DNA of 64,000 nt. Origin: Perna viridis. Lineage: Eukaryota. The DNA lies in contig CM074512.1 in assembly GCA_037379345.1 (NCBI GenBank), forward strand, positions 48,815,597-48,879,596, read 5' to 3'. Shown here one piece after another: positions 14,083 to 53,493 of this stretch (its first letter is position 1; each line of letters starts with the position of its first letter). Under the pieces are notes generated by a model. The model saw only the letters and a program-made list of their open reading frames with translations, did no database searches and was not told the origin of the DNA. Position numbers and translations under genes: made by a program.

Positions 14083-14086
14083 CACA

Positions 14087-24670: not shown

Positions 24671-24795
24671 CGGGGGATAGCGCGAACGCAGTCCCCCACA
24701 CTAAAAAATTGCGTACCCGAGTTGCCCACATTTGGGGCAATCGCAGGCTTCAGCCTAACCGGAGTGCAATGGAAAGGCCTCGACCTGGGGGAACC
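24671..24795 (-). pseudogene. U1: U1 snRNA 3' fragment (nt 40-164) after insertion
   Basis: Resumes at GGTTCCCCCAG after the element poly(A). Confidence 0.92.
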
Positions 24796-25195
24796 TTTTT
24801 TTTTTTAATTTCAAAAATTTATTCAGTAAAACTTCATACGTAATACATGACAATAAATTAAAACATAAATATCACAGATAATACATTGTGCATGTATACA
24901 GATATGAATAATGTATGCATAAATATCAACTTTGTTATTGGTTAATGCAAGAAAGAACATTGGGATAAATAGTTATATCTCAAATCAATACATGATACAT
25001 AGGTATATAATACCTTCTGACACAACAAAACACCTGAAGAGAAAAAAATTCAAATGCCCTGTTATTATAGTACTCCTGTAAATTACAAGACGCCACCCTC
25101 CCATTAACTCAAATAGGGAAAAAATACAAAAATTAAAACTTAAGGGTACCTTAATAGAATCAAGTTAATAAACCTATTACTTCAAGACTTATAAC

Positions 25196-28100
25196 TCAGA
25201 AAAAAGTGATTTCTAAATCATCATCTTGTACTTTACAGAGTAAGTCACTTGAGCACCAAAACTCAGTGAACTTTAGTATTGGAAATCTATAAAAGTCAGC
25301 TTCAATACGTAATTTCAGCTGCTGTAAATAGAAAATATAAATATCATTTGGTAAAACATGTTTACCATCAAACTTTTTACTATTTCTTTTAATCCATACA
25401 GTTTTACAATATAAAGAAATCAACAATAATACCACACTTTTAGTTCTTCCAACAACATTAATATCTCTAAAAAGTATATGTTTATAATCTAAGGAAATAC
25501 TTCCATTAGATAAAGAGAATATCCAATTCTTAATAAGAACAAATAAGTTTTTGACATCCCTACATTCGCAAAATAAATGAATTAAAGTTTCCGGTTCTCT
25601 GGCACAAAAAGTACATCTATTAGACTTATACACATTATGATTAAATAATAAACTATTAGTAGGCAAAACATTATGCACTACTTTATAAATAACATCTCTA
25701 GAAAAGCGATCAATAAACTTATCAAATACATTTTTAAATACAATTCTAAAATCCACTCCAGGATTTTTTTCAACAACTTTAGGAACATAAATTTCCTTTT
25801 CTAATAGAACCTTATACAAAACTTTTGTAGTTACACCCCTTAGATCTACATCACTACACAATTTTAAATCAATTAAAGCATCAATACAACATCTATAAAA
25901 GGACGAAATGACCTCACTGTGAGGCATGTATAAAGATGTAAACAATTCATTATAAAATCGTAAAGAATAACCAGCCCAGTATATCGCATAATTGACAAAC
26001 TTTACCTGTCTATTGTTAATAATATCGGACAAGTGTTTCAAGCGTAACGCTTTTAACTTTAAATCGATATTCACAATATTCAAACCACCCTGACTTAAAT
26101 CTAAATATAAATTCTTACGACTAATCATTTCTACCTTATCATTCCATATAAACTTAAAAATACAACGTTGGAATTTAATTATCCAATGTTTAGACATCGG
26201 CACAACAGTACCTACATACCACAACTTAGATAAAGCACACGTATTTACAATAATTGATTTTTCTAATAAAGATAAACTTCTCAACCTCCATAATTTCAAG
26301 GTCTTTTCTAACTTAATAAAAATGGGATGCCATACATCATCCTGTGACAAATCATTACCACACTTAATACCTATTAATTTCATACTATCAACAAAATTTA
26401 TACCAAATCTATGATTTTCTTTTCTACATTTCCAAGCACCTAACCACATACCTTTTGTTTTATTTTTATTAAGCTTGGAACCTGAACCTTTACCAAATAA
26501 ATCAATCCAATATAAAAATTTATGTATACTTTTATCAGTAGTAACAATACCAGTACTATCATCGGCAAAAACAGATATTTTACAATTATCAACAGAACCA
26601 GGAATATTCATACCAATAATATCAGTATCGTTCACAACTTTACGAACAAAAGGTTCAAGACATAAAACATATAATAAAGGTGACAAACTACACCCTTGTT
26701 TGACAGATCTAGTGATCCGCACAGGGTCAGAAATAAAATTATTCACAATAACTGATGAAGACAAATCATGATATAAAATCTTGATCCATTTAATTAAATT
26801 CGGACCAAAATTAAATTTTTCTAAAACATTGAATAAAAAGGTATGATTAATACGATCAAATGCTTTCTCTTGATCAAGAGAAATGAAAGCACAATTAATA
26901 TTCTTCTGATTAACATAGTCAATAATGTTCCTATGTAAATGGGCATTGTCTAAAATACTTCTGCCCCTAACAGCACAAGTTTGATCAACACCAATAATTT
27001 TATCAGAAACTAAACCCATTCTATTACAAATAATTTTACTTAAAATCTTAACATCAATATTAATTAAACTAATAGGACGATAACATTTAACATCAAAATG
27101 TCTAGAAACATCTTTACAAATAAGAGATATATAACTTGTTCTTTGACTAACTGACAAAGTATTTTCATCAAAAATATTATCATACAAATTTAATAACAAA
27201 GGTGCAAAAATGTCAATAAATTTGACATAAAATTCTTTGGGCAGTCCATCAGGCCCCGGTGATTTATTGTTATCCATACCTTTAACAGAGTTAATAATTT
27301 CATCCTCAGTAATATTAGATTCACAAATATCTCTATCATCATTATCTAACATAGGTAAATCATCTAAGAAATATTTCATAACATCAAAATCAATAGCTTC
27401 CTCTTTAAATAAATCACTATAAAAGTTTTCAAATTGCTTAATAATATCGCAATGTTTTGTAAAAATACCATCATCATTTCTAATTTCACAAATATTTTTC
27501 TTTTTTCCTCTACGAACTTCCTTTTGGAAAAAATATTGACTCGGAAGTTCACTATTATCTAGTAAATTTGCTTTACTTCTAATTTGAGCACCTCTAAAAT
27601 CTTTAACATAATAATCTTTAATCTCATTCTTAAGTACATCAATTTGTTCTGAAAAATTACCTGGCGTTTTCTTTTCTAATTTACATAAATGAAAATATCG
27701 TTTCTCTAATTGTCTAATTACAGTATACTTAAGTTTATTTTTCTTTTTACAATAATCAATACAAAAGACCTTAATATTTTCTTTAAAATAATCCCACATA
27801 TCAATACACATATCTAAACCATCGATAAAGTTAATAAACCACTCTCGAAAAGAAATACAAAAAGCTCTATCGTCTAATATAGAGGTGTTTAATTTCCAAT
27901 AACCTTCACCTCTCTTTACATCAGTGTTATTTACAAACGATACATAAACACAATCATGATCAGAAAAAGCAAAAGGTAGAACGTCACAATTCTTAACAAA
28001 AGGTTTTAATTCACTAGAAAAGTACATGCAATCTAATCGACACGCAATATTATTACCCCGCCAGGTGACACATTTACAATTAGGATATAAATACCTATAA

Positions 28101-28696
28101 ACGTCACAAAGGTCAAAATCAGATACAATGGTTCTTAATTTGTCAACACCTGTAGTACCTAAATGGGGATTTCCCCCGATCTTATCAAGTTTTGGATCCA
28201 TAATACAATTAAAATCACCACCAAATATTTTACAATTCTGTGTCATTAGAAAAGGATATATATACTCAAAGAATTCTTTTCTATCACTACTATCATTAGG
28301 TGCATAAATATTAAACAATCTATACGGAACATTATCAATTTTAACATCAATAAATTGAAAACGTCCGTCTATATCTCTATGATATTTAACTACAACAAAA
28401 TCTATAGAATGAGAAATAAAAATAGCTGTTCCCCTACTTAAATTAGAACCGAAGTTCCAAAAACATCTATACATATGTAAGTATTTATCTAAAATCTTAC
28501 TTACTTTAGAATTCGAAACATGAGTTTCTTGTAAAAATAATATATCTATATATTTACGCAAACAAAATTGCTTCAATACATACTGACATTTCACATCTAA
28601 TAATCCATTAATATTCAAAGTAGCACAATTGATTATGTTTTCTTTTTCAGATAAAGTCGTAATAATATTGATAATTAAGAACGGTATATAACTCAA
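25196..28696 (-). CDS. ORF2: AP-like endonuclease, reverse transcriptase and C-terminal zinc finger (Tx1/L1 type); frame opens at TTG
   Basis: NINGL, LQETH, NIYAPN, GGDFN, SDHD; KSPGPDG, YRPISL, DQEKAFD, QGCSLSP, FADD; CTFC..ETLIHLFCEC. Confidence 0.95.
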   Translation of the reverse strand: MSYIPFLIINIITTLSEKENIINCATLNINGLLDVKCQYVLKQFCLRKYIDILFLQETHVSNSKVSKILDKYLHMYRCFWNFGSNLSRGTAIFISHSIDFVVVKYHRDIDGRFQFIDVKIDNVPYRLFNIYAPNDSSDRKEFFEYIYPFLMTQNCKIFGGDFNCIMDPKLDKIGGNPHLGTTGVDKLRTIVSDFDLCDVYRYLYPNCKCVTWRGNNIACRLDCMYFSSELKPFVKNCDVLPFAFSDHDCVYVSFVNNTDVKRGEGYWKLNTSILDDRAFCISFREWFINFIDGLDMCIDMWDYFKENIKVFCIDYCKKKNKLKYTVIRQLEKRYFHLCKLEKKTPGNFSEQIDVLKNEIKDYYVKDFRGAQIRSKANLLDNSELPSQYFFQKEVRRGKKKNICEIRNDDGIFTKHCDIIKQFENFYSDLFKEEAIDFDVMKYFLDDLPMLDNDDRDICESNITEDEIINSVKGMDNNKSPGPDGLPKEFYVKFIDIFAPLLLNLYDNIFDENTLSVSQRTSYISLICKDVSRHFDVKCYRPISLINIDVKILSKIICNRMGLVSDKIIGVDQTCAVRGRSILDNAHLHRNIIDYVNQKNINCAFISLDQEKAFDRINHTFLFNVLEKFNFGPNLIKWIKILYHDLSSSVIVNNFISDPVRITRSVKQGCSLSPLLYVLCLEPFVRKVVNDTDIIGMNIPGSVDNCKISVFADDSTGIVTTDKSIHKFLYWIDLFGKGSGSKLNKNKTKGMWLGAWKCRKENHRFGINFVDSMKLIGIKCGNDLSQDDVWHPIFIKLEKTLKLWRLRSLSLLEKSIIVNTCALSKLWYVGTVVPMSKHWIIKFQRCIFKFIWNDKVEMISRKNLYLDLSQGGLNIVNIDLKLKALRLKHLSDIINNRQVKFVNYAIYWAGYSLRFYNELFTSLYMPHSEVISSFYRCCIDALIDLKLCSDVDLRGVTTKVLYKVLLEKEIYVPKVVEKNPGVDFRIVFKNVFDKFIDRFSRDVIYKVVHNVLPTNSLLFNHNVYKSNRCTFCAREPETLIHLFCECRDVKNLFVLIKNWIFSLSNGSISLDYKHILFRDINVVGRTKSVVLLLISLYCKTVWIKRNSKKFDGKHVLPNDIYIFYLQQLKLRIEADFYRFPILKFTEFWCSSDLLCKVQDDDLEITFF

Positions 28697-29415
28697 AACG
28701 AATTAGCCAAATTATAATTACAGGTAACTTGCAAGAAATTAAATGTCTGGTTAGGGAAAAGAACAAAGAAACTAATTGCACTGTAAAAATCTAAATGTCC
28801 AAACAAAAGACAAAACACAGTAGATTTAAAAAATCTTTTGAAAATGCAACAGTATTTCAAACGGTCACAATGAAAGAATATGTAACGAAATTTTATCGTC
28901 TGCAAACAAAGATAAATTACAGGTAAGTTATAAACATTATGATAAGAAAAGTTTAAATACCTAAAGGAAGAAAATTGTTCAAGGTGAACTGATACAATAG
29001 ACTTCTCCGACATGCAAAAATTTAAATGTTTAGACAATAGAGCAATTAACTGTTTAAAACAGTTAACAGTGAAAATGATACTAACAAAACAATAGAAAAT
29101 AAAGCACACTCGACAATGACATGTGAGTATATTTTTAGTGTTAATAAAACGTTCTATCAAACAATGAACAGAAAATATTTGAGGCTCTAAGCATTTAACA
29201 CTGAACAGAAATAAGCTAAATGAAACACATCTTGTCACGTATAAAATGAAAACGGCAAATATAGAAAGTGAAAAATTACCAATAACACATAATAATATAC
29301 GATAATACAAAATAATAAACGAAAAGAGAAAAATACACCAATAGGTTGAGTAGTCCATGAACAGAAAGGCTATCAAAACAGGGGGGATAGAATAGTACTC
29401 ATTGTCCATAATCAT
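28693..29415 (-). CDS. Putative third ORF (240 aa, very hydrophobic) between ORF1 and ORF2
   Basis: ATG 16 nt after the ORF1 stop; fills the whole inter-ORF region; its TGA overlaps the ORF2 TTG. Confidence 0.45.
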   Translation of the reverse strand: MIMDNEYYSIPPVLIAFLFMDYSTYWCIFLFSFIILYYRILLCVIGNFSLSIFAVFILYVTRCVSFSLFLFSVKCLEPQIFSVHCLIERFINTKNILTCHCRVCFIFYCFVSIIFTVNCFKQLIALLSKHLNFCMSEKSIVSVHLEQFSSFRYLNFSYHNVYNLPVIYLCLQTIKFRYIFFHCDRLKYCCIFKRFFKSTVFCLLFGHLDFYSAISFFVLFPNQTFNFLQVTCNYNLANSF

Positions 29416-29431
29416 TCCGTTTCATTGTCGT

Positions 29432-30391
29432 TTAACTAACATCAACAGCTGTGTCCTCCGTGTTCTCCGGGGCTGTTATCAAAGAAGGGAGGAAAGGCTT
29501 CATTTCCATTTCCTCCAAATCATCACTACCACCATAATCATTGCACTCCGCCGCTCTTCGCTTCTTGGTTACAGACTCCTCTGTACCATGCCTCATCCCG
29601 CGCTTGTCTTGCGGGGAAGCCATACTCTCCTTCTCCTTCTCTTGCCCCCTCCCGCGCTTGTCTTGCGGGGGGCCCATACCTTCTTTATCCTGCCCCCTCC
29701 CGCGCTTGTCTTGCGGGGGGCCCATACTCTCTTTCTCCTGCCTCCTCCCGCGCTGGTCTTGCTGGGAAACCACATTCACCTCCTGCTCATCTGAAACTCT
29801 TGCTGCAGCAGCATATGAGGGTTTTCCTTTACTTGGGCAGGTAGCCCTCTGATGACCCACCTCATTACATTTTAGACATAATGAGGGTCTCCCTCTCATG
29901 GTTACAAGTATCCGCCTTCCAGCAACAGTCACCTTGTACGGTACCTTATGAACATCAGAATCTGGCATTTCAACCAGATAATTAATGACACCATTTTTTA
30001 ACTTGGTGCCATCAATCACAGTGTCCTCAAAATCTTTCTTAATGATTTTTCCATAATTTTGTAGGAAATTGTCCACATAACAACTCTTCATATGTAGAGG
30101 ATACCAATGTATTCTAATGGCAACTTGTCTCTTATCTAAACGCTCGAAATGGTATAGACTTCCACCTGGAGCCTCAAAAGTTTGTCCCGTGCCCAAAGCA
30201 TCAACTGTATCAGTGGAACTCAACCCAAGATACCAATCTCCACCCTCATCGCACTTATAAATAGCTGTAATCAATGAAGGATTAATGGTTCCTTTCAGCG
30301 CCTCAAGTACTTGTCCTCTGGTATTAAACCACTTTTTCCCAAAATTGACCTTCAGTGTTTTACTCACTGCGTCAGCATCCAAATACTCCAT
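29432..30391 (-). CDS. Tx1-like ORF1 protein type A (319 aa)
   Basis: CCHC knuckle CLKCNEVGHQRATC; ATG 7 nt inside the element. Confidence 0.88.
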   Translation of the reverse strand: MEYLDADAVSKTLKVNFGKKWFNTRGQVLEALKGTINPSLITAIYKCDEGGDWYLGLSSTDTVDALGTGQTFEAPGGSLYHFERLDKRQVAIRIHWYPLHMKSCYVDNFLQNYGKIIKKDFEDTVIDGTKLKNGVINYLVEMPDSDVHKVPYKVTVAGRRILVTMRGRPSLCLKCNEVGHQRATCPSKGKPSYAAAARVSDEQEVNVVSQQDQRGRRQEKESMGPPQDKRGRGQDKEGMGPPQDKRGRGQEKEKESMASPQDKRGMRHGTEESVTKKRRAAECNDYGGSDDLEEMEMKPFLPSLITAPENTEDTAVDVS

Positions 30392-30398
30392 TTTGATT

Positions 30399-30448
30399 CT
30401 GGGGGAACCGCCTTTGTGATCACGGTATCCCCTGTACCAGGTAAGTAT
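30399..30448 (-). pseudogene. U1: U1 snRNA 5' fragment (nt 1-50) fused to element
   Basis: Direct match. Confidence 0.92.
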
Positions 30449-31122
30449 GCTGTAGCACTGTATCGCAGGGCGACTATTTTCAACGCATTTGTAGTTTTCT
30501 GGCGGTGCAATCAATACTTTATTATTGCAGAAAAATTCGTAGTTCATACGCAATGATGAATTGTTGTTGACAAGCACGCGGCAAGTATTTTTTGGCATCT
30601 TATTGATTTACAGAAATGTGAAAAATGCACAATTCAGTTCGATACTGAACAAATATGAAAACCGAAGAAAGTCTAATGTTTAGTAACTCACTTTGTATAC
30701 GTATGCCCAACCTTTTCCCCGTTGTGCTATAAGTGAAATAGCCGGGAAAATTCAGTCAGGATTGGCCCAGTAATTTATACTAAAACTGAGCTTTTTATCA
30801 CATGAAGTTGGTTTTAATTACCAGTGCATTCATTCTAAAATAGATTTCAATTACTATCAATTTCAAATCCAGTCATACATACATACACTAACATGCAGTC
30901 GCGCTCGCCAAGAAGTGCCGAAAAGTGTGAACAGTGTTGAACATATGGTAATACTGACACGTGTACATGCAGTTCTCAATTGTCATACATGGGTATAAAA
31001 AGACAAAATCTGATTTACGGACACATATCGTAGGAAAAATAAACAAATTAAGCGTATTATTTACAGAAAAAGAAAAGCAATTTTAGTAAATATAAGTAAC
31101 AAAAATAACCACATGTTAATCG

Positions 31123-31420
31123 GTTGGGAGTTGTGGCGTGCTCCTGTGATCCAGCTACTTGGAGACCAGAGTTGGCGGACGGTGTGAGGGCAGGAGTCCT
31201 GGTGGCAGGTGATCTATGTTGAGCGGGCGTCCGCACTAAGATCGGCATCAATATGGGCACACCGAGGGAGCTCAGTGTGACCAGGTTGTCTAAGGAGGGA
31301 CGTACAGGCCCAGGGCGGAAACGCAGCAGGCAAAAGTCCCCGTGTCGATCAGTAGTGGGATCGCGCCTGTGAATAGACGCTTGTCAACAGCCTGTCCAAT
31401 ATAACTGGACTCGACTCTTT
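31123..31420 (+). ncRNA. 7SL: 7SL (SRP) RNA
   Basis: Array copy. Confidence 0.95.
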
Positions 31421-31576
31421 TTTTTTCTTTCCCATACTAAAAAAACTAAAAAAAAAAATAAAAAAAATTCAATTAATACGAATCGTATCTCATCTGAGGA
31501 ACCTGCAAGACGTCTCATATTTCAGAACATTTTCCTTCCCAAAATTTTCGCGCCGAGCTTAGCTCGGCGTTTCACA

Positions 31577-31635
<59 letters not shown>

Positions 31636-31990
31636 ATCAAGCACTCAAGCACAAATATATATCAATATCAATATCAACATCCATCTCAAACATTTTCAAT
31701 ACACTTCCATACCATGTCAATACTCAAACATACAACCTACCTACCTACCTACAAACTATCTACATCTAACACTCTTTTTCCATTTATTCCACTCTCACCT
31801 CAGTCTCATCTATTCACTTACTAGTAAGCTTTTCTTTTCACACATAATCCACGCATCATCAACACAAACTTATACCACGCATGCATTTTCATTCAAATGT
31901 AGCCTGTCTAATTCATTATAAGAACACAAGTTGGCAGATTGATCATTGTATGCATTGTAGGGACTGGTCCTTATTTCTTTACATTATAGA

Positions 31991-32154
31991 CGGGGGATAG
32001 CGCGAACGCAGTCCCCCACACTAAAAAATTGCGTACCCGAGTTGCCCACATTTGGGGCAATCGCAGGCTTCAGCCTAACCGGAGTGCAATGGAAAGGCCT
32101 CGACCTGGGGGAACCGCCTTTGTGATCACGGTATCCCCTGTACCAGGTAAGTAT
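31991..32154 (-). ncRNA. U1: U1 snRNA
   Basis: Array copy. Confidence 0.97.
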
Positions 32155-32828
32155 GCTGTAGCACTGTATCGCAGGGCGACTATTTTCAACGCATTTGTAG
32201 TTTTCTGGCGGTGCAATCAATACTTTATTATTGCAGAAAAATTCGTAGTTCATACGCAATGATGAATTGTTGTTGACAAGCACGCGGCAAGTATTTTTTG
32301 GCATCTTATTGATTTACAGAAATGTGAAAAATGCACAATTCAGTTCGATACTGAACAAATATGAAAACCGAAGAAAGTCTAATGTTTAGTAACTCACTTT
32401 GTATACGTATGCCCAACCTTTTCCCCGTTGTGCTATAAGTGAAATAGCCGGGAAAATTCAGTCAGGATTGGCCCAGTAATTTATACTAAAACTGAGCTTT
32501 TTATCACATGAAGTTGGTTTTAATTACCAGTGCATTCATTCTAAAATAGATTTCAATTACTATCAATTTCAAATCCAGTCATACATACATACACTAACAT
32601 GCAGTCGCGCTCGCCAAGAAGTGCCGAAAAGTGTGAACAGTGTTGAACATATGGTAATACTGACACGTGTACATGCAGTTCTCAATTGTCATACATGGGT
32701 ATAAAAAGACAAAATCTGATTTACGGACACATATCGTAGGAAAAATAAACAAATTAAGCGTATTATTTACAGAAAAAGAAAAGCAATTTTAGTAAATATA
32801 AGTAACAAAAATAACCACATGTTAATCG

Positions 32829-33126
32829 GTTGGGAGTTGTGGCGTGCTCCTGTGATCCAGCTACTTGGAGACCAGAGTTGGCGGACGGTGTGAGGGCAGG
32901 AGTCCTGGTGGCAGGTGATCTATGTTGAGCGGGCGTCCGCACTAAGATCGGCATCAATATGGGCACACCGAGGGAGCTCAGTGTGACCAGGTTGTCTAAG
33001 GAGGGACGTACAGGCCCAGGGCGGAAACGCAGCAGGCAAAAGTCCCCGTGTCGATCAGTAGTGGGATCGCGCCTGTGAATAGACGCTTGTCAACAGCCTG
33101 TCCAATATAACTGGACTCGACTCTTT
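32829..33126 (+). ncRNA. 7SL: 7SL (SRP) RNA (terminator variant TTTCTTTTTTT)
   Basis: Array copy. Confidence 0.95.
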
Positions 33127-33283
33127 CTTTTTTTCTTTCCCATACTAAAAAAACTAAAAAAAAAAAAAAAAAAATTCAATTAATACGAATCGTATCTCAT
33201 CTGAGGAACCTGCAAGACGTCTCATATTTCAGAACATTTTCCTTCCCAAAATTTTCGCGCCGAGCATAGCTCGGCGTTTCACA

Positions 33284-33341
<58 letters not shown>

Positions 33342-33697
33342 AAGCACTCAAGCACAAATATATATCAATATCAATATCAACATCCATCTCAAACATTTTC
33401 AATACACTTCCATACCATGTCAATACTCAAACATACAACCTACCTACCTACCTACCTACAAACTATCTACATCTAACACTCTTTTTCCATTTATTCCACT
33501 CTCACCTCAGTCTCATCTATTCACTTACTAGTAAGCTTTTCTTTTCACACATAATCCACGCATCATCAACACAAACTTATACCACGCATGCATTTTCATT
33601 CAAATGTAGCCTGTCTAATTCATTATAAGAACACAAGTTGGCAGATTGATCATTGTATGCATTGTAGGGACTGGTCCTTATTTCTTTACATTATAGA

Positions 33698-33861
33698 CGG
33701 GGGATAGCGCGAACGCAGTCCCCCACACTAAAAAATTGCGTACCCGAGTTGCCCACATTTGGGGCAATCGCAGGCTTCAGCCTAACCGGAGTGCAATGGA
33801 AAGGCCTCGACCTGGGGGAACCGCCTTTGTGATCACGGTATCCCCTGTACCAGGTAAGTAT
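33698..33861 (-). ncRNA. U1: U1 snRNA
   Basis: Array copy. Confidence 0.97.
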
Positions 33862-34535
33862 GCTGTAGCACTGTATCGCAGGGCGACTATTTTCAACGCA
33901 TTTGTAGTTTTCTGGCGGTGCAATCAATACTTTATTATTGCAGAAAAATTCGTAGTTCATACGCAATGATGAATTGTTGTTGACAAGCACGCGGCAAGTA
34001 TTTTTTGGCATCTTATTGATTTACAGAAATGTGAAAAATGCACAATTCAGTTCGATACTGAACAAATATGAAAACCGAAGAAAGTCTAATGTTTAGTAAC
34101 TCACTTTGTATACGTATGCCCAACCTTTTCCCCGTTGTGCTATAAGTGAAATAGCCGGGAAAATTCAGTCAGGATTGGCCCAGTAATTTATACTAAAACT
34201 GAGCTTTTTATCACATGAAGTTGGTTTTAATTACCAGTGCATTCATTCTAAAATAGATTTCAATTACTATCAATTTCAAATCCAGTCATACATACATACA
34301 CTAACATGCAGTCGCGCTCGCCAAGAAGTGCCGAAAAGTGTGAACAGTGTTGAACATATGGTAATACTGACACGTGTACATGCAGTTCTCAATTGTCATA
34401 CATGGGTATAAAAAGACAAAATCTGATTTACGGACACATATCGTAGGAAAAATAAACAAATTAAGCGTATTATTTACAGAAAAAGAAAAGCAATTTTAGT
34501 AAATATAAGTAACAAAAATAACCACATGTTAATCG

Positions 34536-34833
34536 GTTGGGAGTTGTGGCGTGCTCCTGTGATCCAGCTACTTGGAGACCAGAGTTGGCGGACGGTGTGA
34601 GGGCAGGAGTCCTGGTGGCAGGTGATCTATGTTGAGCGGGCGTCCGCACTAAGATCGGCATCAATATGGGCACACCGAGGGAGCTCAGTGTGACCAGGTT
34701 GTCTAAGGAGGGACGTACAGGCCCAGGGCGGAAACGCAGCAGGCAAAAGTCCCCGTGTCGATCAGTAGTGGGATCGCGCCTGTGAATAGACGCTTGTCAA
34801 CAGCCTGTCCAATATAACTGGACTCGACTCTTT
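34536..34833 (+). ncRNA. 7SL: 7SL (SRP) RNA
   Basis: Array copy. Confidence 0.95.
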
Positions 34834-42764: not shown

Positions 42765-43438
42765 GCTGTAGCACTGTATCGCAGGGCGACTATTTTCAAC
42801 GCATTTGTAGTTTTCTGGCGGTGCAATCAATACTTTATTATTGCAGAAAAATTCGTAGTTCATACGCAATGATGAATTGTTGTTGACAAGCACGCGGCAA
42901 GTATTTTTTGGCATCTTATTGATTTACAGAAATGTGAAAAATGCACAATTCAGTTCGATACTGAACAAATATGAAAACCGAAGAAAGTCTAATGTTTAGT
43001 AACTCACTTTGTATACGTATGCCCAACCTTTTCCCCGTTGTGCTATAAGTGAAATAGCCGGGAAAATTCAGTCAGGATTGGCCCAGTAATTTATACTAAA
43101 ACTGAGCTTTTTATCACATGAAGTTGGTTTTAATTACCAGTGCATTCATTCTAAAATAGATTTCAATTACTATCAATTTCAAATCCAGTCATACATACAT
43201 ACACTAACATGCAGTCGCGCTCGCCAAGAAGTGCCGAAAAGTGTGAACAGTGTTGAACATATGGTAATACTGACACGTGTACATGCAGTTCTCAATTGTC
43301 ATACATGGGTATAAAAAGACAAAATCTGATTTACGGACACATATCGTAGGAAAAATAAACAAATTAAGCGTATTATTTACAGAAAAAGAAAAGCAATTTT
43401 AGTAAATATAAGTAACAAAAATAACCACATGTTAATCG

Positions 43439-43736
43439 GTTGGGAGTTGTGGCGTGCTCCTGTGATCCAGCTACTTGGAGACCAGAGTTGGCGGACGGTG
43501 TGAGGGCAGGAGTCCTGGTGGCAGGTGATCTATGTTGAGCGGGCGTCCGCACTAAGATCGGCATCAATATGGGCACACCGAGGGAGCTCAGTGTGACCAG
43601 GTTGTCTAAGGAGGGACGTACAGGCCCAGGGCGGAAACGCAGCAGGCAAAAGTCCCCGTGTCGATCAGTAGTGGGATCGCGCCTGTGAATAGACGCTTGT
43701 CAACAGCCTGTCCAATATAACTGGACTCGACTCTTT
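43439..43736 (+). ncRNA. 7SL: 7SL (SRP) RNA
   Basis: Array copy. Confidence 0.95.
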
Positions 43737-43892
43737 TTTTTTCTTTCCCATACTAAAAAAACTAAAAAAAAAAATAAAAAAAATTCAATTAATACGAATC
43801 GTATCTCATCTGAGGAACCTGCAAGACGTCTCATATTTCAGAACATTTTCCTTCCCAAAATTTTCGCGCCGAGCATAGCTCGGCGTTTCACA

Positions 43893-43959
<67 letters not shown>

Positions 43960-44318
43960 ATCAAGCACTCAAGCACAAATATATATCAATATCAATATCA
44001 ACATCCATCTCAAACATTTTCAATACACTTCCATACCATGTCAATACTCAAACATACAACCTACCTACCTACCTACCTACAAACTATCTACATCTAACAC
44101 TCTTTTTCCATTTATTCCACTCTCACCTCAGTCTCATCTATTCACTTACTAGTAAGCTTTTCTTTTCACACATAATCCACGCATCATCAACACAAACTTA
44201 TACCACGCATGCATTTTCATTCAAATGTAGCCTGTCTAATTCATTATAAGAACACAAGTTGGCAGTTTGATCATTGTATGCATTGTAGGGACTGGTCCTT
44301 ATTTCTTTACATTATAGA

Positions 44319-44482
44319 CGGGGGATAGCGCGAACGCAGTCCCCCACACTAAAAAATTGCGTACCCGAGTTGCCCACATTTGGGGCAATCGCAGGCTTCA
44401 GCCTAACCGGAGTGCAATGGAAAGGCCTCGACCTGGGGGAACCGCCTTTGTGATCACGGTATCCCCTGTACCAGGTAAGTAT
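44319..44482 (-). ncRNA. U1: U1 snRNA
   Basis: Array copy. Confidence 0.97.
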
Positions 44483-45156
44483 GCTGTAGCACTGTATCGC
44501 AGGGCGACTATTTTCAACGCATTTGTAGTTTTCTGGCGGTGCAATCAATACTTTATTATTGCAGAAAAATTCGTAGTTCATACGCAATGATGAATTGTTG
44601 TTGACAAGCACGCGGCAAGTATTTTTTGGCATCTTATTGATTTACAGAAATGTGAAAAATGCACAATTCAGTTCGATACTGAACAAATATGAAAACCGAA
44701 GAAAGTCTAATGTTTAGTAACTCACTTTGTATACGTATGCCCAACCTTTTCCCCGTTGTGCTATAAGTGAAATAGCCGGGAAAATTCAGTCAGGATTGGC
44801 CCAGTAATTTATACTAAAACTGAGCTTTTTATCACATGAAGTTGGTTTTAATTACCAGTGCATTCATTCTAAAATAGATTTCAATTACTATCAATTTCAA
44901 ATCCAGTCATACATACATACACTAACATGCAGTCGCGCTCGCCAAGAAGTGCCGAAAAGTGTGAACAGTGTTGAACATATGGTAATACTGACACGTGTAC
45001 ATGCAGTTCTCAATTGTCATATATGGGTATAAAAAGACAAAATCTGATTTACGGACACATATCGTAGGAAAAATAAACAAATTAAGCGTATTATTTACAG
45101 AAAAAGAAAAGCAATTTTAGTAAATATAAGTAACAAAAATAACCACATGTTAATCG

Positions 45157-45454
45157 GTTGGGAGTTGTGGCGTGCTCCTGTGATCCAGCTACTTGGAGAC
45201 CAGAGTTGGCGGACGGTGTGAGGGCAGGAGTCCTGGTGGCAGGTGATCTATGTTGAGCGGGCGTCCGCACTAAGATCGGCATCAATATGGGCACACCGAG
45301 GGAGCTCAGTGTGACCAGGTTGTCTAAGGAGGGACGTACAGGCCCAGGGCGGAAACGCAGCAGGCAAAAGTCCCCGTGTCGATCAGTAGTGGGATCGCGC
45401 CTGTGAATAGACGCTTGTCAACAGCCTGTCCAATATAACTGGACTCGACTCTTT
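45157..45454 (+). ncRNA. 7SL: 7SL (SRP) RNA
   Basis: Array copy. Confidence 0.95.
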
Positions 45455-45610
45455 TTTTTTCTTTCCCATACTAAAAAAACTAAAAAAAAAAATAAAAAAA
45501 ATTCAATTAATACGAATCGTATCTCATCTGAGGAACCTGCAAGACGTCTCATATTTCAGAACATTTTCCTTCCCAAAATTTTCGCGCCGAGCATAGCTCG
45601 GCGTTTCACA

Positions 45611-45663
<53 letters not shown>

Positions 45664-46018
45664 ATCAAGCACTCAAGCACAAATATATATCAATATCAAT
45701 ATCAACATCCATCTCAAACATTTTCAATACACTTCCATACCATGTCAATACTCAAACATACAACCTACCTACCTACCTACAAACTATCTACATCTAACAC
45801 TCTTTTTCCATTTATTCCACTCTCACCTCAGTCTCATCTATTCACTTACTAGTAAGCTTTTCTTTTCACACATAATCCACGCATCATCAACACAAACTTA
45901 TACCACGCATGCATTTTCATTCAAATGTAGCCTGTCTAATTCATTATAAGAACACAAGTTGGCAGATTGATCATTGTATGCATTGTAGGGACTGGTCCTT
46001 ATTTCTTTACATTATAGA

Positions 46019-46182
46019 CGGGGGATAGCGCGAACGCAGTCCCCCACACTAAAAAATTGCGTACCCGAGTTGCCCACATTTGGGGCAATCGCAGGCTTCA
46101 GCCTAACCGGAGTGCAATGGAAAGGCCTCGACCTGGGGGGACCGCCTTTGTGATCACGGTATCCCCTGTACCAGGTAAGTAT
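46019..46182 (-). ncRNA. U1: U1 snRNA (U43C variant)
   Basis: Array copy with a>g at 46140. Confidence 0.95.
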
Positions 46183-46856
46183 GCTGTAGCACTGTATCGC
46201 AGGGCGACTATTTTCAACGCATTTGTAGTTTTCTGGCGGTGCAATCAATACTTTATTATTGCAGAAAAATTCGTAGTTCATACGCAATGATGAATTGTTG
46301 TTGACAAGCACGCGGCAAGTATTTTTTGGCATCTTATTGATTTACAGAAATGTGAAAAATGCACAATTCAGTTCGATACTGAACAAATATGAAAACCGAA
46401 GAAAGTCTAATGTTTAGTAACTCACTTTGTATACGTATGCCCAACCTTTTCCCCGTTGTGCTATAAGTGAAATAGCCGGGAAAATTCAGTCAGGATTGGC
46501 CCAGTAATTTATACTAAAACTGAGCTTTTTATCACATGAAGTTGGTTTTAATTACCAGTGCATTCATTCTAAAATAGATTTCAATTACTATCAATTTCAA
46601 ATCCAGTCATACATACATACACTAACATGCAGTCGCGCTCGCCAAGAAGTGCCGAAAAGTGTGAACAGTGTTGAACATATGGTAATACTGACACGTGTAC
46701 ATGCAGTTCTCAATTGTCATACATGGGTATAAAAAGACAAAATCTGATTTACGGACACATATCGTAGGAAAAATAAACAAATTAAGCGTATTATTTACAG
46801 AAAAAGAAAAGCAATTTTAGTAAATATAAGTAACAAAAATAACCACATGTTAATCG

Positions 46857-47154
46857 GTTGGGAGTTGTGGCGTGCTCCTGTGATCCAGCTACTTGGAGAC
46901 CAGAGTTGGCGGACGGTGTGAGGGCAGGAGTCCTGGTGGCAGGTGATCTATGTTGAGCGGGCGTCCGCACTAAGATCGGCATCAATATGGGCACACCGAG
47001 GGAGCTCAGTGTGACCAGGTTGTCTAAGGAGGGACGTACAGGCCCAGGGCGGAAACGCAGCAGGCAAAAGTCCCCGTGTCGATCAGTAGTGGGATCGCGC
47101 CTGTGAATAGACGCTTGTCAACAGCCTGTCCAATATAACTGGACTCGACTCTTT
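46857..47154 (+). ncRNA. 7SL: 7SL (SRP) RNA
   Basis: Array copy. Confidence 0.95.
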
Positions 47155-47310
47155 TTTTTTCTTTCCCATACTAAAAAAACTAAAAAAAAAAATAAAAAAA
47201 ATTCAATTAATACGAATCGTATCTCATCTGAGGAACCTGCAAGACGTCTCATATTTCAGAACATTTTCCTTCCCAAAATTTTCGCGCCGAGCATAGCTCG
47301 GCGTTTCACA

Positions 47311-47355
<45 letters not shown>

Positions 47356-47710
47356 ATCAAGCACTCAAGCACAAATATATATCAATATCAATATCAACAT
47401 CCATCTCAAACATTTTCAATACACTTCCATACCATGTCAATACTCAAACATACAACCTACCTACCTACCTACAAACTATCTACATCTAACACTCTTTTTC
47501 CATTTATTCCACTCTCACCTCAGTCTCATCTATTCACTTACTAGTAAGCTTTTCTTTTCACACATAATCCACGCATCATCAACACAAACTTATACCACGC
47601 ATGCATTTTCATTCAAATGTAGCCTGTCTAATTCATTATAAGAACACAAGTTGGCAGATTGATCATTGTATGCATTGTAGGGACTGGTCCTTATTTCTTT
47701 ACATTATAGA

Positions 47711-47834
47711 CGGGGGATAGCGCGAACGCAGTCCCCCACACTAAAAAATTGCGTACCCGAGTTGCCCACATTTGGGGCAATCGCAGGCTTCAGCCTAACC
47801 GGAGTGCAATGGAAAGGCCTCGACCTGGGGGAAC
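47711..47834 (-). pseudogene. U1: U1 snRNA 3' fragment (nt 41-164) after insertion
   Basis: Direct match. Confidence 0.92.
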
Positions 47835-48240
47835 TTTTTTTTTTTTTTTTAATTTCAAACAATTTATTCAGTAAAACTTCATACGTAATACATGACAATA
47901 AATTAAAACATAAATATCACAGATAATACATTGTGCATGTATACAGATATGAATAATGTATGCATAAATATCAACTTTGTTATTGGTTAATGCAAGAAAG
48001 AACATTGGGATAAATAGTTATATCTCAAATCAATACATGATACATAGGTATATAATACCTTCTGACACAACAAAACACCTGAAGAGAAAAAAATTCAAAT
48101 GCCCTGTTATTATAGTACTCCTGTAAATTACAAGACGCCACCCTCCCATTAACTCAAATAGGGAAAAAATACAAAAATTAAAACTTAAGGGTACCTTAAT
48201 AGAATCAAGTTAATAAACCTATTACTTCAAGACTTATAAC

Positions 48241-51200
48241 TCAGAAAAAAGTGATTTCTAAATCATCATCTTGTACTTTACAGAGTAAGTCACTTGAGCA
48301 CCAAAACTCAGTGAACTTTAGTATTGGAAATCTATAAAAGTCAGCTTCAATACGTAATTTCAGCTGCTGTAAATAGAAAATATAAATATCATTTGGTAAA
48401 ACATGTTTACCATCAAACTTTTTACTATTTCTTTTAATCCATACAGTTTTACAATATAAAGAAATCAACAATAATACCACACTTTTAGTTCTTCCAACAA
48501 CATTAATATCTCTAAAAAGTATATGTTTATAATCTAAGGAAATACTTCCATTAGATAAAGAGAATATCCAATTCTTAATAAGAACAAATAAGTTTTTGAC
48601 ATCCCTACATTCGCAAAATAAATGAATTAAAGTTTCCGGTTCTCTGGCACAAAAAGTACATCTATTAGACTTATACACATTATGATTAAATAATAAACTA
48701 TTAGTAGGCAAAACATTATGCACTACTTTATAAATAACATCTCTAGAAAAGCGATCAATAAACTTATCAAATACATTTTTAAATACAATTCTAAAATCCA
48801 CTCCAGGATTTTTTTCAACAACTTTAGGAACATAAATTTCCTTTTCTAATAGAACCTTATACAAAACTTTTGTAGTTACACCCCTTAGATCTACATCACT
48901 ACACAATTTTAAATCAATTAAAGCATCAATACAACATCTATAAAAGGACGAAATGACCTCACTGTGAGGCATGTATAAAGATGTAAACAATTCATTATAA
49001 AATCGTAAAGAATAACCAGCCCAGTATATCGCATAATTGACAAACTTTACCTGTCTATTGTTAATAATATCGGACAAGTGTTTCAAGCGTAACGCTTTTA
49101 ACTTTAAATCGATATTCACAATATTCAAACCACCCTGACTTAAATCTAAATATAAATTCTTACGACTAATCATTTCTACCTTATCATTCCATATAAACTT
49201 AAAAATACAACGTTGGAATTTAATTATCCAATGTTTAGACATCGGCACAACAGTACCTACATACCACAACTTAGATAAAGCACACGTATTTACAATAATT
49301 GATTTTTCTAATAAAGATAAACTTCTCAACCTCCATAATTTCAAGGTCTTTTCTAACTTAATAAAAATGGGATGCCATACATCATCCTGTGACAAATCAT
49401 TACCACACTTAATACCTATTAATTTCATACTATCAACAAAATTTATACCAAATCTATGATTTTCTTTTCTACATTTCCAAGCACCTAACCACATACCTTT
49501 TGTTTTATTTTTATTAAGCTTGGAACCTGAACCTTTACCAAATAAATCAATCCAATATAAAAATTTATGTATACTTTTATCAGTAGTAACAATACCAGTA
49601 CTATCATCGGCAAAAACAGATATTTTACAATTATCAACAGAACCAGGAATATTCATACCAATAATATCAGTATCGTTCACAACTTTACGAACAAAAGGTT
49701 CAAGACATAAAACATATAATAAAGGTGACAAACTACACCCTTGTTTGACAGATCTAGTGATCCGCACAGGGTCAGAAATAAAATTATTCACAATAACTGA
49801 TGAAGACAAATCATGATATAAAATCTTGATCCATTTAATTAAATTCGGACCAAAATTAAATTTTTCTAAAACATTGAATAAAAAGGTATGATTAATACGA
49901 TCAAATGCTTTCTCTTGATCAAGAGAAATGAAAGCACAATTAATATTCTTCTGATTAACATAGTCAATAATGTTCCTATGTAAATGGGCATTGTCTAAAA
50001 TACTTCTGCCCCTAACAGCACAAGTTTGATCAACACCAATAATTTTATCAGAAACTAAACCCATTCTATTACAAATAATTTTACTTAAAATCTTAACATC
50101 AATATTAATTAAACTAATAGGACGATAACATTTAACATCAAAATGTCTAGAAACATCTTTACAAATAAGAGATATATAACTTGTTCTTTGACTAACTGAC
50201 AAAGTATTTTCATCAAAAATATTATCATACAAATTTAATAACAAAGGTGCAAAAATGTCAATAAATTTGACATAAAATTCTTTGGGCAGTCCATCAGGCC
50301 CCGGTGATTTATTGTTATCCATACCTTTAACAGAGTTAATAATTTCATCCTCAGTAATATTAGATTCACAAATATCTCTATCATCATTATCTAACATAGG
50401 TAAATCATCTAAGAAATATTTCATAACATCAAAATCAATAGCTTCCTCTTTAAATAAATCACTATAAAAGTTTTCAAATTGCTTAATAATATCGCAATGT
50501 TTTGTAAAAATACCATCATCATTTCTAATTTCACAAATATTTTTCTTTTTTCCTCTACGAACTTCCTTTTGGAAAAAATATTGACTCGGAAGTTCACTAT
50601 TATCTAGTAAATTTGCTTTACTTCTAATTTGAGCACCTCTAAAATCTTTAACATAATAATCTTTAATCTCATTCTTAAGTACATCAATTTGTTCTGAAAA
50701 ATTACCTGGCGTTTTCTTTTCTAATTTACATAAATGAAAATATCGTTTCTCTAATTGTCTAATTACAGTATACTTAAGTTTATTTTTCTTTTTACAATAA
50801 TCAATACAAAAGACCTTAATATTTTCTTTAAAATAATCCCACATATCAATACACATATCTAAACCATCGATAAAGTTAATAAACCACTCTCGAAAAGAAA
50901 TACAAAAAGCTCTATCGTCTAATATAGAGGTGTTTAATTTCCAATAACCTTCACCTCTCTTTACATCAGTGTTATTTACAAACGATACATAAACACAATC
51001 ATGATCAGAAAAAGCAAAAGGTAGAACGTCACAATTCTTAACAAAAGGTTTTAATTCACTAGAAAAGTACATGCAATCTAATCGACACGCAATATTATTA
51101 CCCCGCCAGGTGACACATTTACAATTAGGATATAAATACCTATAAACGTCACAAAGGTCAAAATCAGATACAATGGTTCTTAATTTGTCAACACCTGTAG

Positions 51201-51741
51201 TACCTAAATGGGGATTTCCCCCGATCTTATCAAGTTTTGGATCCATAATACAATTAAAATCACCACCAAATATTTTACAATTCTGTGTCATTAGAAAAGG
51301 ATATATATACTCAAAGAATTCTTTTCTATCACTACTATCATTAGGTGCATAAATATTAAACAATCTATACGGAACATTATCAATTTTAACATCAATAAAT
51401 TGAAAACGTCCGTCTATATCTCTATGATATTTAACTACAACAAAATCTATAGAATGAGAAATAAAAATAGCTGTTCCCCTACTTAAATTAGAACCGAAGT
51501 TCCAAAAACATCTATACATATGTAAGTATTTATCTAAAATCTTACTTACTTTAGAATTCGAAACATGAGTTTCTTGTAAAAATAATATATCTATATATTT
51601 ACGCAAACAAAATTGCTTCAATACATACTGACATTTCACATCTAATAATCCATTAATATTCAAAGTAGCACAATTGATTATGTTTTCTTTTTCAGATAAA
51701 GTCGTAATAATATTGATAATTAAGAACGGTATATAACTCAA
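48241..51741 (-). CDS. ORF2 (APE endonuclease-RT-zinc finger), type A
   Basis: Same protein as 25196-28696. Confidence 0.95.
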   Translation of the reverse strand: MSYIPFLIINIITTLSEKENIINCATLNINGLLDVKCQYVLKQFCLRKYIDILFLQETHVSNSKVSKILDKYLHMYRCFWNFGSNLSRGTAIFISHSIDFVVVKYHRDIDGRFQFIDVKIDNVPYRLFNIYAPNDSSDRKEFFEYIYPFLMTQNCKIFGGDFNCIMDPKLDKIGGNPHLGTTGVDKLRTIVSDFDLCDVYRYLYPNCKCVTWRGNNIACRLDCMYFSSELKPFVKNCDVLPFAFSDHDCVYVSFVNNTDVKRGEGYWKLNTSILDDRAFCISFREWFINFIDGLDMCIDMWDYFKENIKVFCIDYCKKKNKLKYTVIRQLEKRYFHLCKLEKKTPGNFSEQIDVLKNEIKDYYVKDFRGAQIRSKANLLDNSELPSQYFFQKEVRRGKKKNICEIRNDDGIFTKHCDIIKQFENFYSDLFKEEAIDFDVMKYFLDDLPMLDNDDRDICESNITEDEIINSVKGMDNNKSPGPDGLPKEFYVKFIDIFAPLLLNLYDNIFDENTLSVSQRTSYISLICKDVSRHFDVKCYRPISLINIDVKILSKIICNRMGLVSDKIIGVDQTCAVRGRSILDNAHLHRNIIDYVNQKNINCAFISLDQEKAFDRINHTFLFNVLEKFNFGPNLIKWIKILYHDLSSSVIVNNFISDPVRITRSVKQGCSLSPLLYVLCLEPFVRKVVNDTDIIGMNIPGSVDNCKISVFADDSTGIVTTDKSIHKFLYWIDLFGKGSGSKLNKNKTKGMWLGAWKCRKENHRFGINFVDSMKLIGIKCGNDLSQDDVWHPIFIKLEKTLKLWRLRSLSLLEKSIIVNTCALSKLWYVGTVVPMSKHWIIKFQRCIFKFIWNDKVEMISRKNLYLDLSQGGLNIVNIDLKLKALRLKHLSDIINNRQVKFVNYAIYWAGYSLRFYNELFTSLYMPHSEVISSFYRCCIDALIDLKLCSDVDLRGVTTKVLYKVLLEKEIYVPKVVEKNPGVDFRIVFKNVFDKFIDRFSRDVIYKVVHNVLPTNSLLFNHNVYKSNRCTFCAREPETLIHLFCECRDVKNLFVLIKNWIFSLSNGSISLDYKHILFRDINVVGRTKSVVLLLISLYCKTVWIKRNSKKFDGKHVLPNDIYIFYLQQLKLRIEADFYRFPILKFTEFWCSSDLLCKVQDDDLEITFF

Positions 51742-52460
51742 AACGAATTAGCCAAATTATAATTACAGGTAACTTGCAAGAAATTAAATGTCTGGTTAGG
51801 GAAAAGAACAAAGAAACTAATTGCACTGTAAAAATCTAAATGTCCAAACAAAAGACAAAACACAGTAGATTTAAAAAATCTTTTGAAAATGCAACAGTAT
51901 TTCAAACGGTCACAATGAAAGAATATGTAACGAAATTTTATCGTCTGCAAACAAAGATAAATTACAGGTAAGTTATAAACATTATGATAAGAAAAGTTTA
52001 AATACCTAAAGGAAGAAAATTGTTCAAGGTGAACTGATACAATAGACTTCTCCGACATGCAAAAATTTAAATGTTTAGACAATAGAGCAATTAACTGTTT
52101 AAAACAGTTAACAGTGAAAATGATACTAACAAAACAATAGAAAATAAAGCACACTCGACAATGACATGTGAGTATATTTTTAGTGTTAATAAAACGTTCT
52201 ATCAAACAATGAACAGAAAATATTTGAGGCTCTAAGCATTTAACACTGAACAGAAATAAGCTAAATGAAACACATCTTGTCACGTATAAAATGAAAACGG
52301 CAAATATAGAAAGTGAAAAATTACCAATAACACATAATAATATACGATAATACAAAATAATAAACGAAAAGAGAAAAATACACCAATAGGTTGAGTAGTC
52401 CATGAACAGAAAGGCTATCAAAACAGGGGGGATAGAATAGTTCTCATTGTCCATAATCAT
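51738..52460 (-). CDS. Putative third ORF (240 aa, hydrophobic)
   Basis: As 28693-29415, with one Y>N difference. Confidence 0.45.
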   Translation of the reverse strand: MIMDNENYSIPPVLIAFLFMDYSTYWCIFLFSFIILYYRILLCVIGNFSLSIFAVFILYVTRCVSFSLFLFSVKCLEPQIFSVHCLIERFINTKNILTCHCRVCFIFYCFVSIIFTVNCFKQLIALLSKHLNFCMSEKSIVSVHLEQFSSFRYLNFSYHNVYNLPVIYLCLQTIKFRYIFFHCDRLKYCCIFKRFFKSTVFCLLFGHLDFYSAISFFVLFPNQTFNFLQVTCNYNLANSF

Positions 52461-52476
52461 TCCGTTTCATTGTCGT

Positions 52477-53436
52477 TTAACTAACATCAACAGCTGTGTC
52501 CTCCGTGTTCTCCGGGGCTGTTATCAAAGAAGGGAGGAAAGGCTTCATTTCCATTTCCTCCAAATCATCACTACCACCATAATCATTGCACTCCGCCGCT
52601 CTTCGCTTCTTGGTTACAGACTCCTCTGTACCATGCCTCATCCCGCGCTTGTCTTGCGGGGAAGCCATACTCTCCTTCTCCTTCTCTTGCCCCCTCCCGC
52701 GCTTGTCTTGCGGGGGGCCCATACCTTCTTTATCCTGCCCCCTCCCGCGCTTGTCTTGCGGGGGGCCCATACTCTCTTTCTCCTGCCTCCTCCCGCGCTG
52801 GTCTTGCTGGGAAACCACATTCACCTCCTGCTCATCTGAAACTCTTGCTGCAGCAGCATATGAGGGTTTTCCTTTACTTGGGCAGGTAGCCCTCTGATGA
52901 CCCACCTCATTACATTTTAGACATAATGAGGGTCTCCCTCTCATGGTTACAAGTATCCGCCTTCCAGCAACAGTCACCTTGTACGGTACCTTATGAACAT
53001 CAGAATCTGGCATTTCAACCAGATAATTAATGACACCATTTTTTAACTTGGTGCCATCAATCACAGTGTCCTCAAAATCTTTCTTAATGATTTTTCCATA
53101 ATTTTGTAGGAAATTGTCCACATAACAACTCTTCATATGTAGAGGATACCAATGTATTCTAATGGCAACTTGTCTCTTATCTAAACGCTCGAAATGGTAT
53201 AGACTTCCACCTGGAGCCTCAAAAGTTTGTCCCGTGCCCAAAGCATCAACTGTATCAGTGGAACTCAACCCAAGATACCAATCTCCACCCTCATCGCACT
53301 TATAAATAGCTGTAATCAATGAAGGATTAATGGTTCCTTTCAGCGCCTCAAGTACTTGTCCTCTGGTATTAAACCACTTTTTCCCAAAATTGACCTTCAG
53401 TGTTTTACTCACTGCGTCAGCATCCAAATACTCCAT
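52477..53436 (-). CDS. Tx1-like ORF1 protein type A (319 aa)
   Basis: As 29432-30391. Confidence 0.88.
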   Translation of the reverse strand: MEYLDADAVSKTLKVNFGKKWFNTRGQVLEALKGTINPSLITAIYKCDEGGDWYLGLSSTDTVDALGTGQTFEAPGGSLYHFERLDKRQVAIRIHWYPLHMKSCYVDNFLQNYGKIIKKDFEDTVIDGTKLKNGVINYLVEMPDSDVHKVPYKVTVAGRRILVTMRGRPSLCLKCNEVGHQRATCPSKGKPSYAAAARVSDEQEVNVVSQQDQRGRRQEKESMGPPQDKRGRGQDKEGMGPPQDKRGRGQEKEKESMASPQDKRGMRHGTEESVTKKRRAAECNDYGGSDDLEEMEMKPFLPSLITAPENTEDTAVDVS

Positions 53437-53443
53437 TTTGATT

Positions 53444-53493
53444 CTGGGGGAACCGCCTTTGTGATCACGGTATCCCCTGTACCAGGTAAGTAT
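53444..53493 (-). pseudogene. U1: U1 snRNA 5' fragment (nt 1-50) fused to element
   Basis: Direct match. Confidence 0.92.

Follow-up and report, generated by a model that had tools for sequence, protein, structure and literature searches.

How does a retrotransposon come to lie again and again at one nucleotide of the U1 small nuclear RNA (snRNA) gene? This question is raised by a 64,000-nucleotide (nt) stretch of the Perna viridis genome (GCA_037379345.1, contig CM074512.1, positions 48,815,597 to 48,879,596, hereafter the window), which contains no N and carries a tandem array of U1 and 7SL genes. Three full-length elements encoding an apurinic/apyrimidinic endonuclease (APE) and a reverse transcriptase (RT), named E1, E2 and E3, lie on its minus strand at the positions given by an earlier reading of the letters alone (the first-pass annotation). 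All are co-oriented with U1, and each interrupts one U1 gene. It is very likely that they represent a young, probably still mobile retrotransposon without long terminal repeats (non-LTR), of the Tx1 clade, belonging to a Keno-like branch in which each member resides in one snRNA gene family.

The junctions, read from the sequence, are as the first-pass annotation had described them. The poly(A) tails of E1, E2 and E3 (A11, A14 and A16) join U1 at nt 40, 40 and 41, and the flanking target duplications are 11, 16 and 10 bp long. The tails are pure, and an AATAAA signal lies about 13-14 nt upstream of them. Rfam matches identify 20 7SL genes on the plus strand and, on the minus strand, 17 U1 genes that are intact plus three 3' remnants of U1; exact-word counts give 21 5' ends and 20 3' parts of U1. 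Together with a shortened copy, E0, the three elements occupy 4 of the 21 U1 loci in the window, and sequence comparison across the window finds no element in any of its 7SL genes or spacers. The array continues past the window end, where further U1 genes are present. Its units are near-identical: nearly all variation is in a (CA)n tract, which has about 0-19 repeats, and at a few single-nucleotide polymorphisms (SNPs); adjacent units tend to have variants in common.

Both open reading frames (ORFs), ORF1 of 319-323 and ORF2 of 1152-1166 amino acids, run without internal stops in all three full-length elements. ORF2 matches the Pfam models Exo_endo_phos (residues 25-247), RVT_1 (537-751) and zf-RVT (1000-1048), and its best relative of solved structure is human L1 ORF2p, aligned over residues 22-887 with E = 5e-71; the Protein Atlas yielded nothing further. 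The layout of APE, RT and C-terminal zinc-binding region is common to the Tx1 and L1 clades and cannot separate them. The identification of the family as an APE-type, site-specific long interspersed nuclear element (LINE) of Tx1 kind that hits U1 at nt 39/40 is supported. ORF1 matches no Pfam or NCBIfam model, and a CCHC knuckle is visible in its translations, CLKCNEVGHQRATC in E1 and CLKCGEFGHVRAKC in E2. The T-rich spacer between ORF1 and ORF2 contains one long open frame of 130-240 codons, extending roughly from the stop of ORF1 to the start of ORF2, with a weakly conserved N-terminal motif, IPP..M..DYDF.LRL..KC. This frame is present in every relative and occupies the same position in E1, E2, L054-L059, L139 and L140; it could be a third ORF or a device coupling the translation of ORF2.

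Two copies in the window depart from the E1 layout. From about position 1925 onward to its 3' end, E2 matches E1 at 98-100% identity; upstream, identity falls sharply to 64-72%, and the sequences then become unalignable, the two ORF1 products sharing 29% amino acid identity. On this comparison E2 is a recombinant, its 5' 1.9 kb including ORF1 being derived from a divergent lineage. E0 has the usual 5' junction at U1 nt 50 and a different 3' junction, at U1 nt 87; its layout is the one that would be expected for a prematurely polyadenylated RNA, rather than for a simple fragment.

A genome-wide search with the 3' untranslated region (UTR) finds about ten 3' ends, about nine of them young. Two of the young ones lie in a non-U1 tandem gene on chromosome C8, here called X. 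The copies are 99.4-99.98% alike, with tails of A8, A9, A11, A14, A16 and A20, and on two chromosomes at least six 3' junctions are at U1 nt 40/41. C9 (30.01-30.06 Mb) carries a second U1 array, which has a 1.07-kb unit and no 7SL. This array holds a full E1-type copy preceded head-to-tail by a 5'-truncated one (joined as A20 + GGTTCCTCCAG + element start), an E2-type copy that has an internal deletion and its 5' junction at nt 55, and a 368-nt 5' fragment; the 3' junctions in this array are all at U1 nt 40. Two subfamilies that differ in their 5' junction are each present on both C2 and C9.

The X copies make the term 'U1-specific', used by the first-pass annotation, too strong, since 2 of about 9 young 3' ends lie in the 996-bp repeat on C8 and older copies lie in a related array. 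X forms a tandem array of several hundred units on C8. The two young copies there are 5'-truncated and 99.4% identical to E1, and one of them has a complete ORF2. They are inserted at ...TGTGGC/GGTTTTTGCTGGTCTTATCAG and flanked by a duplication of about 17 bp, and the U1 site is ...AAAGGC/GGTTCCCCCAGGTCGAGG; GGC/GGTT (the slash marking the putative nick) is common to both. An older copy with 91% identity occupies the same position in a related 970-bp array on C9 (13.9 Mb), and on C11 a relative at 67-82% identity adjoins X-like sequence. The 996-bp and 970-bp arrays are about 74% alike, and both have an upstream block resembling a proximal sequence element (PSE), a TATA box and a chain of hairpins. 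The X unit matches no Rfam family at E <= 1. Its features suggest a candidate snRNA-like tandem gene, that is, a highly repeated small-RNA gene. A spliced-leader RNA was considered for X and rejected, as no convincing donor or Sm site was found.

It is conceivable that X was the original target and that U1 was gained recently through the same GGCGGTT word. The older copy and the C11 relative in X-like genes would fit such an order, as would the U2-like word CTGGTCTTATCAG carried by X and the end of the X duplication at TCTTA, which is also where the duplications of U2-targeting relatives end. However, the margin of the C9 U1 array holds degraded ORF1 fragments of both E1 and E2 type with 82-93% identity, indicating that the association with U1 is also old. 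Moreover, full-length copies are seen in U1 only, and relatives at 46-65% identity in other organisms are already in U1. An X-first history is thus unlikely, and residence in U1, with X as a second target, is the reading preferred here.

A protein search has placed this family among relatives at 61-69% ORF2 identity and many more at 30-46%, whose targets were read from their contigs (Table 1). In L059, U1 is interrupted after nt 45. L140, which carries P0006 of the L059 lineage (64-65% identity), has tandem copies linked by identical A8+GGTCTC, indicating that the 3' junction is again at U1 nt 40. In P0012 (46%), poly(A) adjoins U1 nt 37. The first-pass annotation had left open whether a U1-targeting relative was already catalogued. 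Close relatives elsewhere do occupy the U1 site, so the lineage is not peculiar to Perna viridis; the part of its novelty that stands is that no published description was found. In P. viridis itself, judged by coordinates alone, a 67% family lies inside a U2 array (C12:15.13-15.30 Mb), a 60% family lies between split U4 halves in a U4 array (C5:23.81-23.84 Mb), and a 61% fragment is about 8 kb away from the closest gene listed for a U5 array (C12:3.60-3.68 Mb). Sister families thus appear to occupy the U2, U4 and U5 arrays of this genome. Separately, the distant Tx1-like L071 (JAAUXV010022918.1, 34% identity) has a U1-derived 5' head (540-600; 5815-5916); poly(A)/GTGATCACTAAGGCG comes next, and after it a further copy with a U1 head. 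Its junction is near U1 nt 26, and it appears to be a separate U1-associated lineage.

In trees of ORF2 the window family falls, with full support, within a group of 11 elements that target U1, U2 and U5. Its nearest neighbours are P0005 (no target assigned) and P0001 (U2), and the other lineage that targets U1 at nt 40 pairs with a U2-targeting element. The trees also group the family with unnamed elements whose insertions are in 5S, in tRNA and at the U2 site of Keno. On whole ORF2, monophyly of U1 targeting is rejected for the two close lineages (p = 0.009) and more strongly when P0011 and P0012 are included (p ~1e-89); the constrained groups were named after the tree had been seen, and recombination of the kind found in E2 could blur the signal. 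The tree of the endonuclease alone is unresolved, and grouping of the two closest U1 lineages is not rejected there (p = 0.10). At least 8 target changes are required for the 6 target states among 17 labelled rows, suggesting that target switching among snRNA genes has been frequent in this branch.

Table 1. Coordinates of the elements, their target array and gene X, and targets of relatives. Positions are those of the window unless a contig is named; a slash marks a junction.
Feature	Position	Strand	Details
E1, full-length	24796..30398	-	5603 nt including A11 tail; 3' flank U1 from nt 40; 5' flank U1 nt 1-50
E1 ORF1	29432-30391	-	
E1 open spacer frame	28693-29415	-	
E1 ORF2	25196-28696	-	
E1 target duplication	3' copy 24785-24795; 5' copy 30399-30409	-	GGTTCCCCCAG (U1 nt 40-50)
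U1 nt 1-50 immediately upstream of E1	30399..30448	-	ORF1 ATG starts 7 nt past U1 nt 50
E2, full-length, recombinant	37207..42709	-	5503 nt, A14 tail; then U1 nt 40; preceded by U1 nt 1-55
E2 ORF1	41684-42655	-	
E2 ORF2	37611-41069	-	
E2 target duplication	37191-37206 and 42710-42725	-	16 bp (U1 nt 40-55)
E3, full-length	47835..53443	-	A16 tail; then U1 nt 41
E3 ORF1	52477-53436	-	
E3 ORF2	48241-51741	-	
E3 target duplication	47825-47834 and 53444-53453	-	10 bp
E0, shortened copy	11424..12958	-	U1 nt 1-50 (12909-12958) + element nt 1-1397 (11512-12908)
E0, remainder		-	A10 (11502-11511) + U1 nt 87-164 (11424-11501); array end about 45 nt further
U1 (- strand)/7SL (+ strand) tandem array, target	12909..64000	-	about 1.7-kb unit; Rfam matches, U1 word counts
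Gene X	L030:1400-1640 (C8 about 44.62 Mb), also L020, L022		four hairpins; several hundred units on C8 and C9
P0001, P0004, P0007			61-67% ORF2 identity; U2, poly(A)/GTATCTGTTCTTATC (nt 36)
P0002, P0003			62-63% ORF2 identity; U5
P0014			51% ORF2 identity; U5
L065	6230-6400		34% ORF2 identity; U4, junction .../TATTGCTGATTGAAAACTTTTGCC
L066, L068, L069			31-33% ORF2 identity; U2 resuming at nt 39
L080			30% ORF2 identity; 5S
L078			30% ORF2 identity; tRNA

The spread of targets over U1, U2, U4, U5 and X, which differ in sequence and have the same promoter type, raises the question of whether the elements are directed by the transcription apparatus of snRNA genes or by promoter-proximal chromatin, with the exact nucleotide as a secondary preference. 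Every site is about 36-53 nt away from the RNA start, known or predicted (U1 nt 37-40, U2 36-39, U5 about 45-50, U4 about 53, and X about 43, counted from the TATA box), and X has a conserved PSE-like block and a TATA box. In contrast, the junction is nucleotide-exact in each lineage, and the GGC/GGTT at the nick is common to U1 and X. A second insertion has been made into a U1(1-50) stub, which keeps this word and is no longer a normal gene. Sequence-specific cleavage is, in addition, established for the Tx1L and R1Bm endonucleases, according to the passages on them in PMC8869645 and PMC1919474. Targeting primarily through transcription units is, on balance, improbable. A broader version would have the clade radiating over the Sm-class snRNA genes (U1, U2, U4 and U5, plus X) with repeated switching, U1 being reached at least 2 times; its members would be tethered to snRNA-type transcription units, with the endonuclease only fine-tuning the nucleotide, and their RNAs would be made from the host gene's promoter as fusions to an snRNA leader. 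This combined scheme is a possibility of low probability, and recognition of a short site by the endonuclease is the reading followed below.

The first-pass annotation had also proposed independent insertion events from the differing 3' junctions in the window. Independent events are proven by the C9 copies, which lie outside the window: the C9 duplications carry a C9-specific U1 variant (C46T), GGTTCCTCCAG, on both sides, indicating that these insertions were made in place and not moved from C2. The differing junctions of E1 and E3 are insufficient by themselves. These two copies differ by 1 substitution in 5603 nt (15 in 5599 between E1 and the C9 copy), and their flanking units differ by one SNP and (CA)n length only; A11+G in E1 versus A16 in E3 could be due to slippage and one change after array duplication. 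The wider proposal that unequal crossing-over and gene conversion multiplied one or very few ancient insertions across the arrays, so that the copies would say little on specificity or activity, is very improbable: the array units are almost identical, E1 and E3 are nearly so and share their 5' junction, and the tandem copies of another species with identical A8+GGTCTC linkers are duplication-like, but copies lie on three chromosomes, the C9 duplications match their own array, tail lengths vary from A8 to A20, 5' truncation points vary, two X copies each have their own duplication of about 17 bp, and the same site is used in unrelated species.

Public sequencing data contain traces of the element: most words of the element are contained in about 20 runs, which come from 11 studies of this organism. 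In the raw reads of the RNA sequencing (RNA-seq) run X21, 11 of 11 element reads have one orientation, and all are at least 99% alike; this orientation is sense under the usual convention for stranded libraries. Run X16, from the same study as X21, yields a 3835-nt contig across ORF2 and the 3' UTR. Contigs of run X10 tile nearly the whole element, and one spans 29698-30428, passing from ORF1 into U1 nt 21-50. Run X22 was tried as junction evidence and discarded, nearly all of its reads being ordinary U1 snRNA that overlaps the 50-nt leader. In X10, the internally deleted E2-type copy of C9 (joint at 25226/28085, with AAAT filler in place of 2858 nt) has a depth of 21, and this copy may be transcribed.

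Several observations weigh against a young, U1-directed and still mobile Tx1 element. The frame of ORF2 lacks an ATG at its start, opening at TTG in E1 and E3 and having GTG in E2 at the position of the relatives' ATG (28680-28700 and 41050-41075, minus strand), while ORF2 begins with ATG in 6 of 6 relatives checked. In X21 the element is weakly expressed, at about 1 read per million. That X10 and X16 are RNA is only a guess, so that a chimeric U1-element RNA lacks proof. A single insertion, duplicated through unequal crossing-over, might account for both E1 and E3. The family also uses X, so that 'U1-specific' is too narrow a name for it. Finally, placement in the Tx1 clade is based on the targets of the relatives and not on named reference sequences. 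The apparent activity noted in the first-pass annotation is accordingly best put in two parts: intact ORFs, near-identical copies and RNA-seq reads speak for it, and the want of an AUG at ORF2 speaks against it, present activity itself being a prediction.

How insertion at U1 may proceed is suggested by analogy with Tx1L and R1Bm. The APE-type endonuclease would nick the antisense strand of U1 between nt 39 and 40, and the polyadenylated element RNA would be reverse-transcribed from the nick in a target-primed reaction. The site recognised by the enzyme would be short, and the family also uses GGC/GGTT in the snRNA-like X. The second element in the U1(1-50) stub lies upstream of a resident copy in tandem, suggesting that nicking needs nothing past U1 nt 50; unequal crossing-over of occupied units could also give such a tandem. 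CWGGTC, found downstream of the nick in both U1 and X, was tried as part of the recognised site and rejected, as it is missing at the insertion into the stub.

The 5' junction is constant per subfamily across chromosomes, at nt 50 in the E1 type and nt 55 in the E2 type, and it is at nt 45 in the L059 type; full-length copies have almost no 5' UTR. These observations lead to the hypothesis that the element, lacking a promoter of its own, would rely on the U1 promoter to make a U1(1-50)-element RNA, and that homology between the target and the U1 leader, carried by the RNA or by the complementary DNA, would set the 5' junction. The U1 nt 1-50 segment upstream of E1 is probably such a transcribed leader. 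In agreement with this, E0 retains its 5' junction at nt 50 despite a 3' junction at nt 87. The duplications of about 17 bp at the truncated X copies, which lack the 5' end and thus any leader, also count for the model. Some crocodilian Tx1 families have U1- or U2-derived 5' heads (PMC4494074), as the leader model would predict.

Among known systems the nearest is Keno, a Tx1-clade APE-type non-LTR retrotransposon of U2 snRNA genes (Kojima & Fujiwara 2004, in the account given by PMC4494074 and PMC4640811). The protein architecture is the same, and both Keno and the window family lie co-oriented inside an Sm-class snRNA gene. The closest relatives of the family (61-67%) are in U2, and distant kin (31-33%) are at the canonical site, where U2 resumes at nt 39, the published site of Keno and Utopia (PMC4640811). 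In contrast, the window family targets U1 nt 39/40 and X, not U2, and its close U2-targeting relatives use nt 36, not nt 39. Because the 3' flank of the full-length window copies is U1 nt 40/41, the family is not to be filed as Keno, although its nearest relatives target U2. Tx1L of Xenopus laevis, Mutsu (5S), Dewa (tRNA), Kibi and Koshi (microsatellites) and Tx1-Mar (Mariner) share with it an APE and sequence-specific insertion, and relatives of the window family at about 30% adjoin 5S and tRNA. The difference is the target: the published Tx1 targets found are U2, U5, 5S, tRNA spacers, satellites, microsatellites and transposons (PMC4494074, PMC3706591; figure 3 of the former gives U2, U5, 5S, satellites, microsatellites and transposons), and U1 is absent among them.

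Dada-U1, in the U1 genes of zebrafish (PMC3706591), likewise has multicopy U1 as a safe haven, with one fixed site and one orientation, but it is a DNA transposon with a DDE-type transposase that makes a 6-bp duplication (GCGAAT) at another site in U1 by another mechanism. R2, R1 and Utopia resemble the window family in their precise 3' junctions, more variable 5' junctions and tandem insertions, and R2 is known to be co-transcribed with its host gene, as proposed here for the U1 leader; R2 and Utopia, however, have a restriction-like endonuclease, and R1 is an APE element of another clade. According to a 2015 paper, the elements reported from snRNA genes up to then were Keno and Utopia (both in U2), Dada-U1 and Dada-U6 alone (PMC4640811). 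No published report of a U1-targeting non-LTR element was found in the literature searched, Repbase and Dfam being outside that search, and no listing of U4 as a Tx1 target was found in the literature. U1, with X, is thus a new target for a known kind of element.

Outside the array, two direct repeats of about 280 bp (3711-3988 and 10673-10976), 75-86% alike and 6.98 kb apart, lie to its left; they could represent the two ends of a further mobile element.

Site-specific LINEs attract study both as parasites in safe harbours and, to a growing extent, as templates for programmable gene insertion. With the family described here, U1 joins the snRNA genes published as retrotransposon targets, and X points to a highly repeated small-RNA gene that matches no Rfam family. 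E0 and the subfamily-fixed 5' junctions provide unusually clean genomic evidence for 5' joining via an RNA-borne leader from the host gene. The branch as a whole offers a natural series of related APE endonucleases, 60-67% identical, each on a different short site (U1, U2, U4, U5 and X), and with four such families side by side in one genome it is a good data set for the residues that determine target choice.

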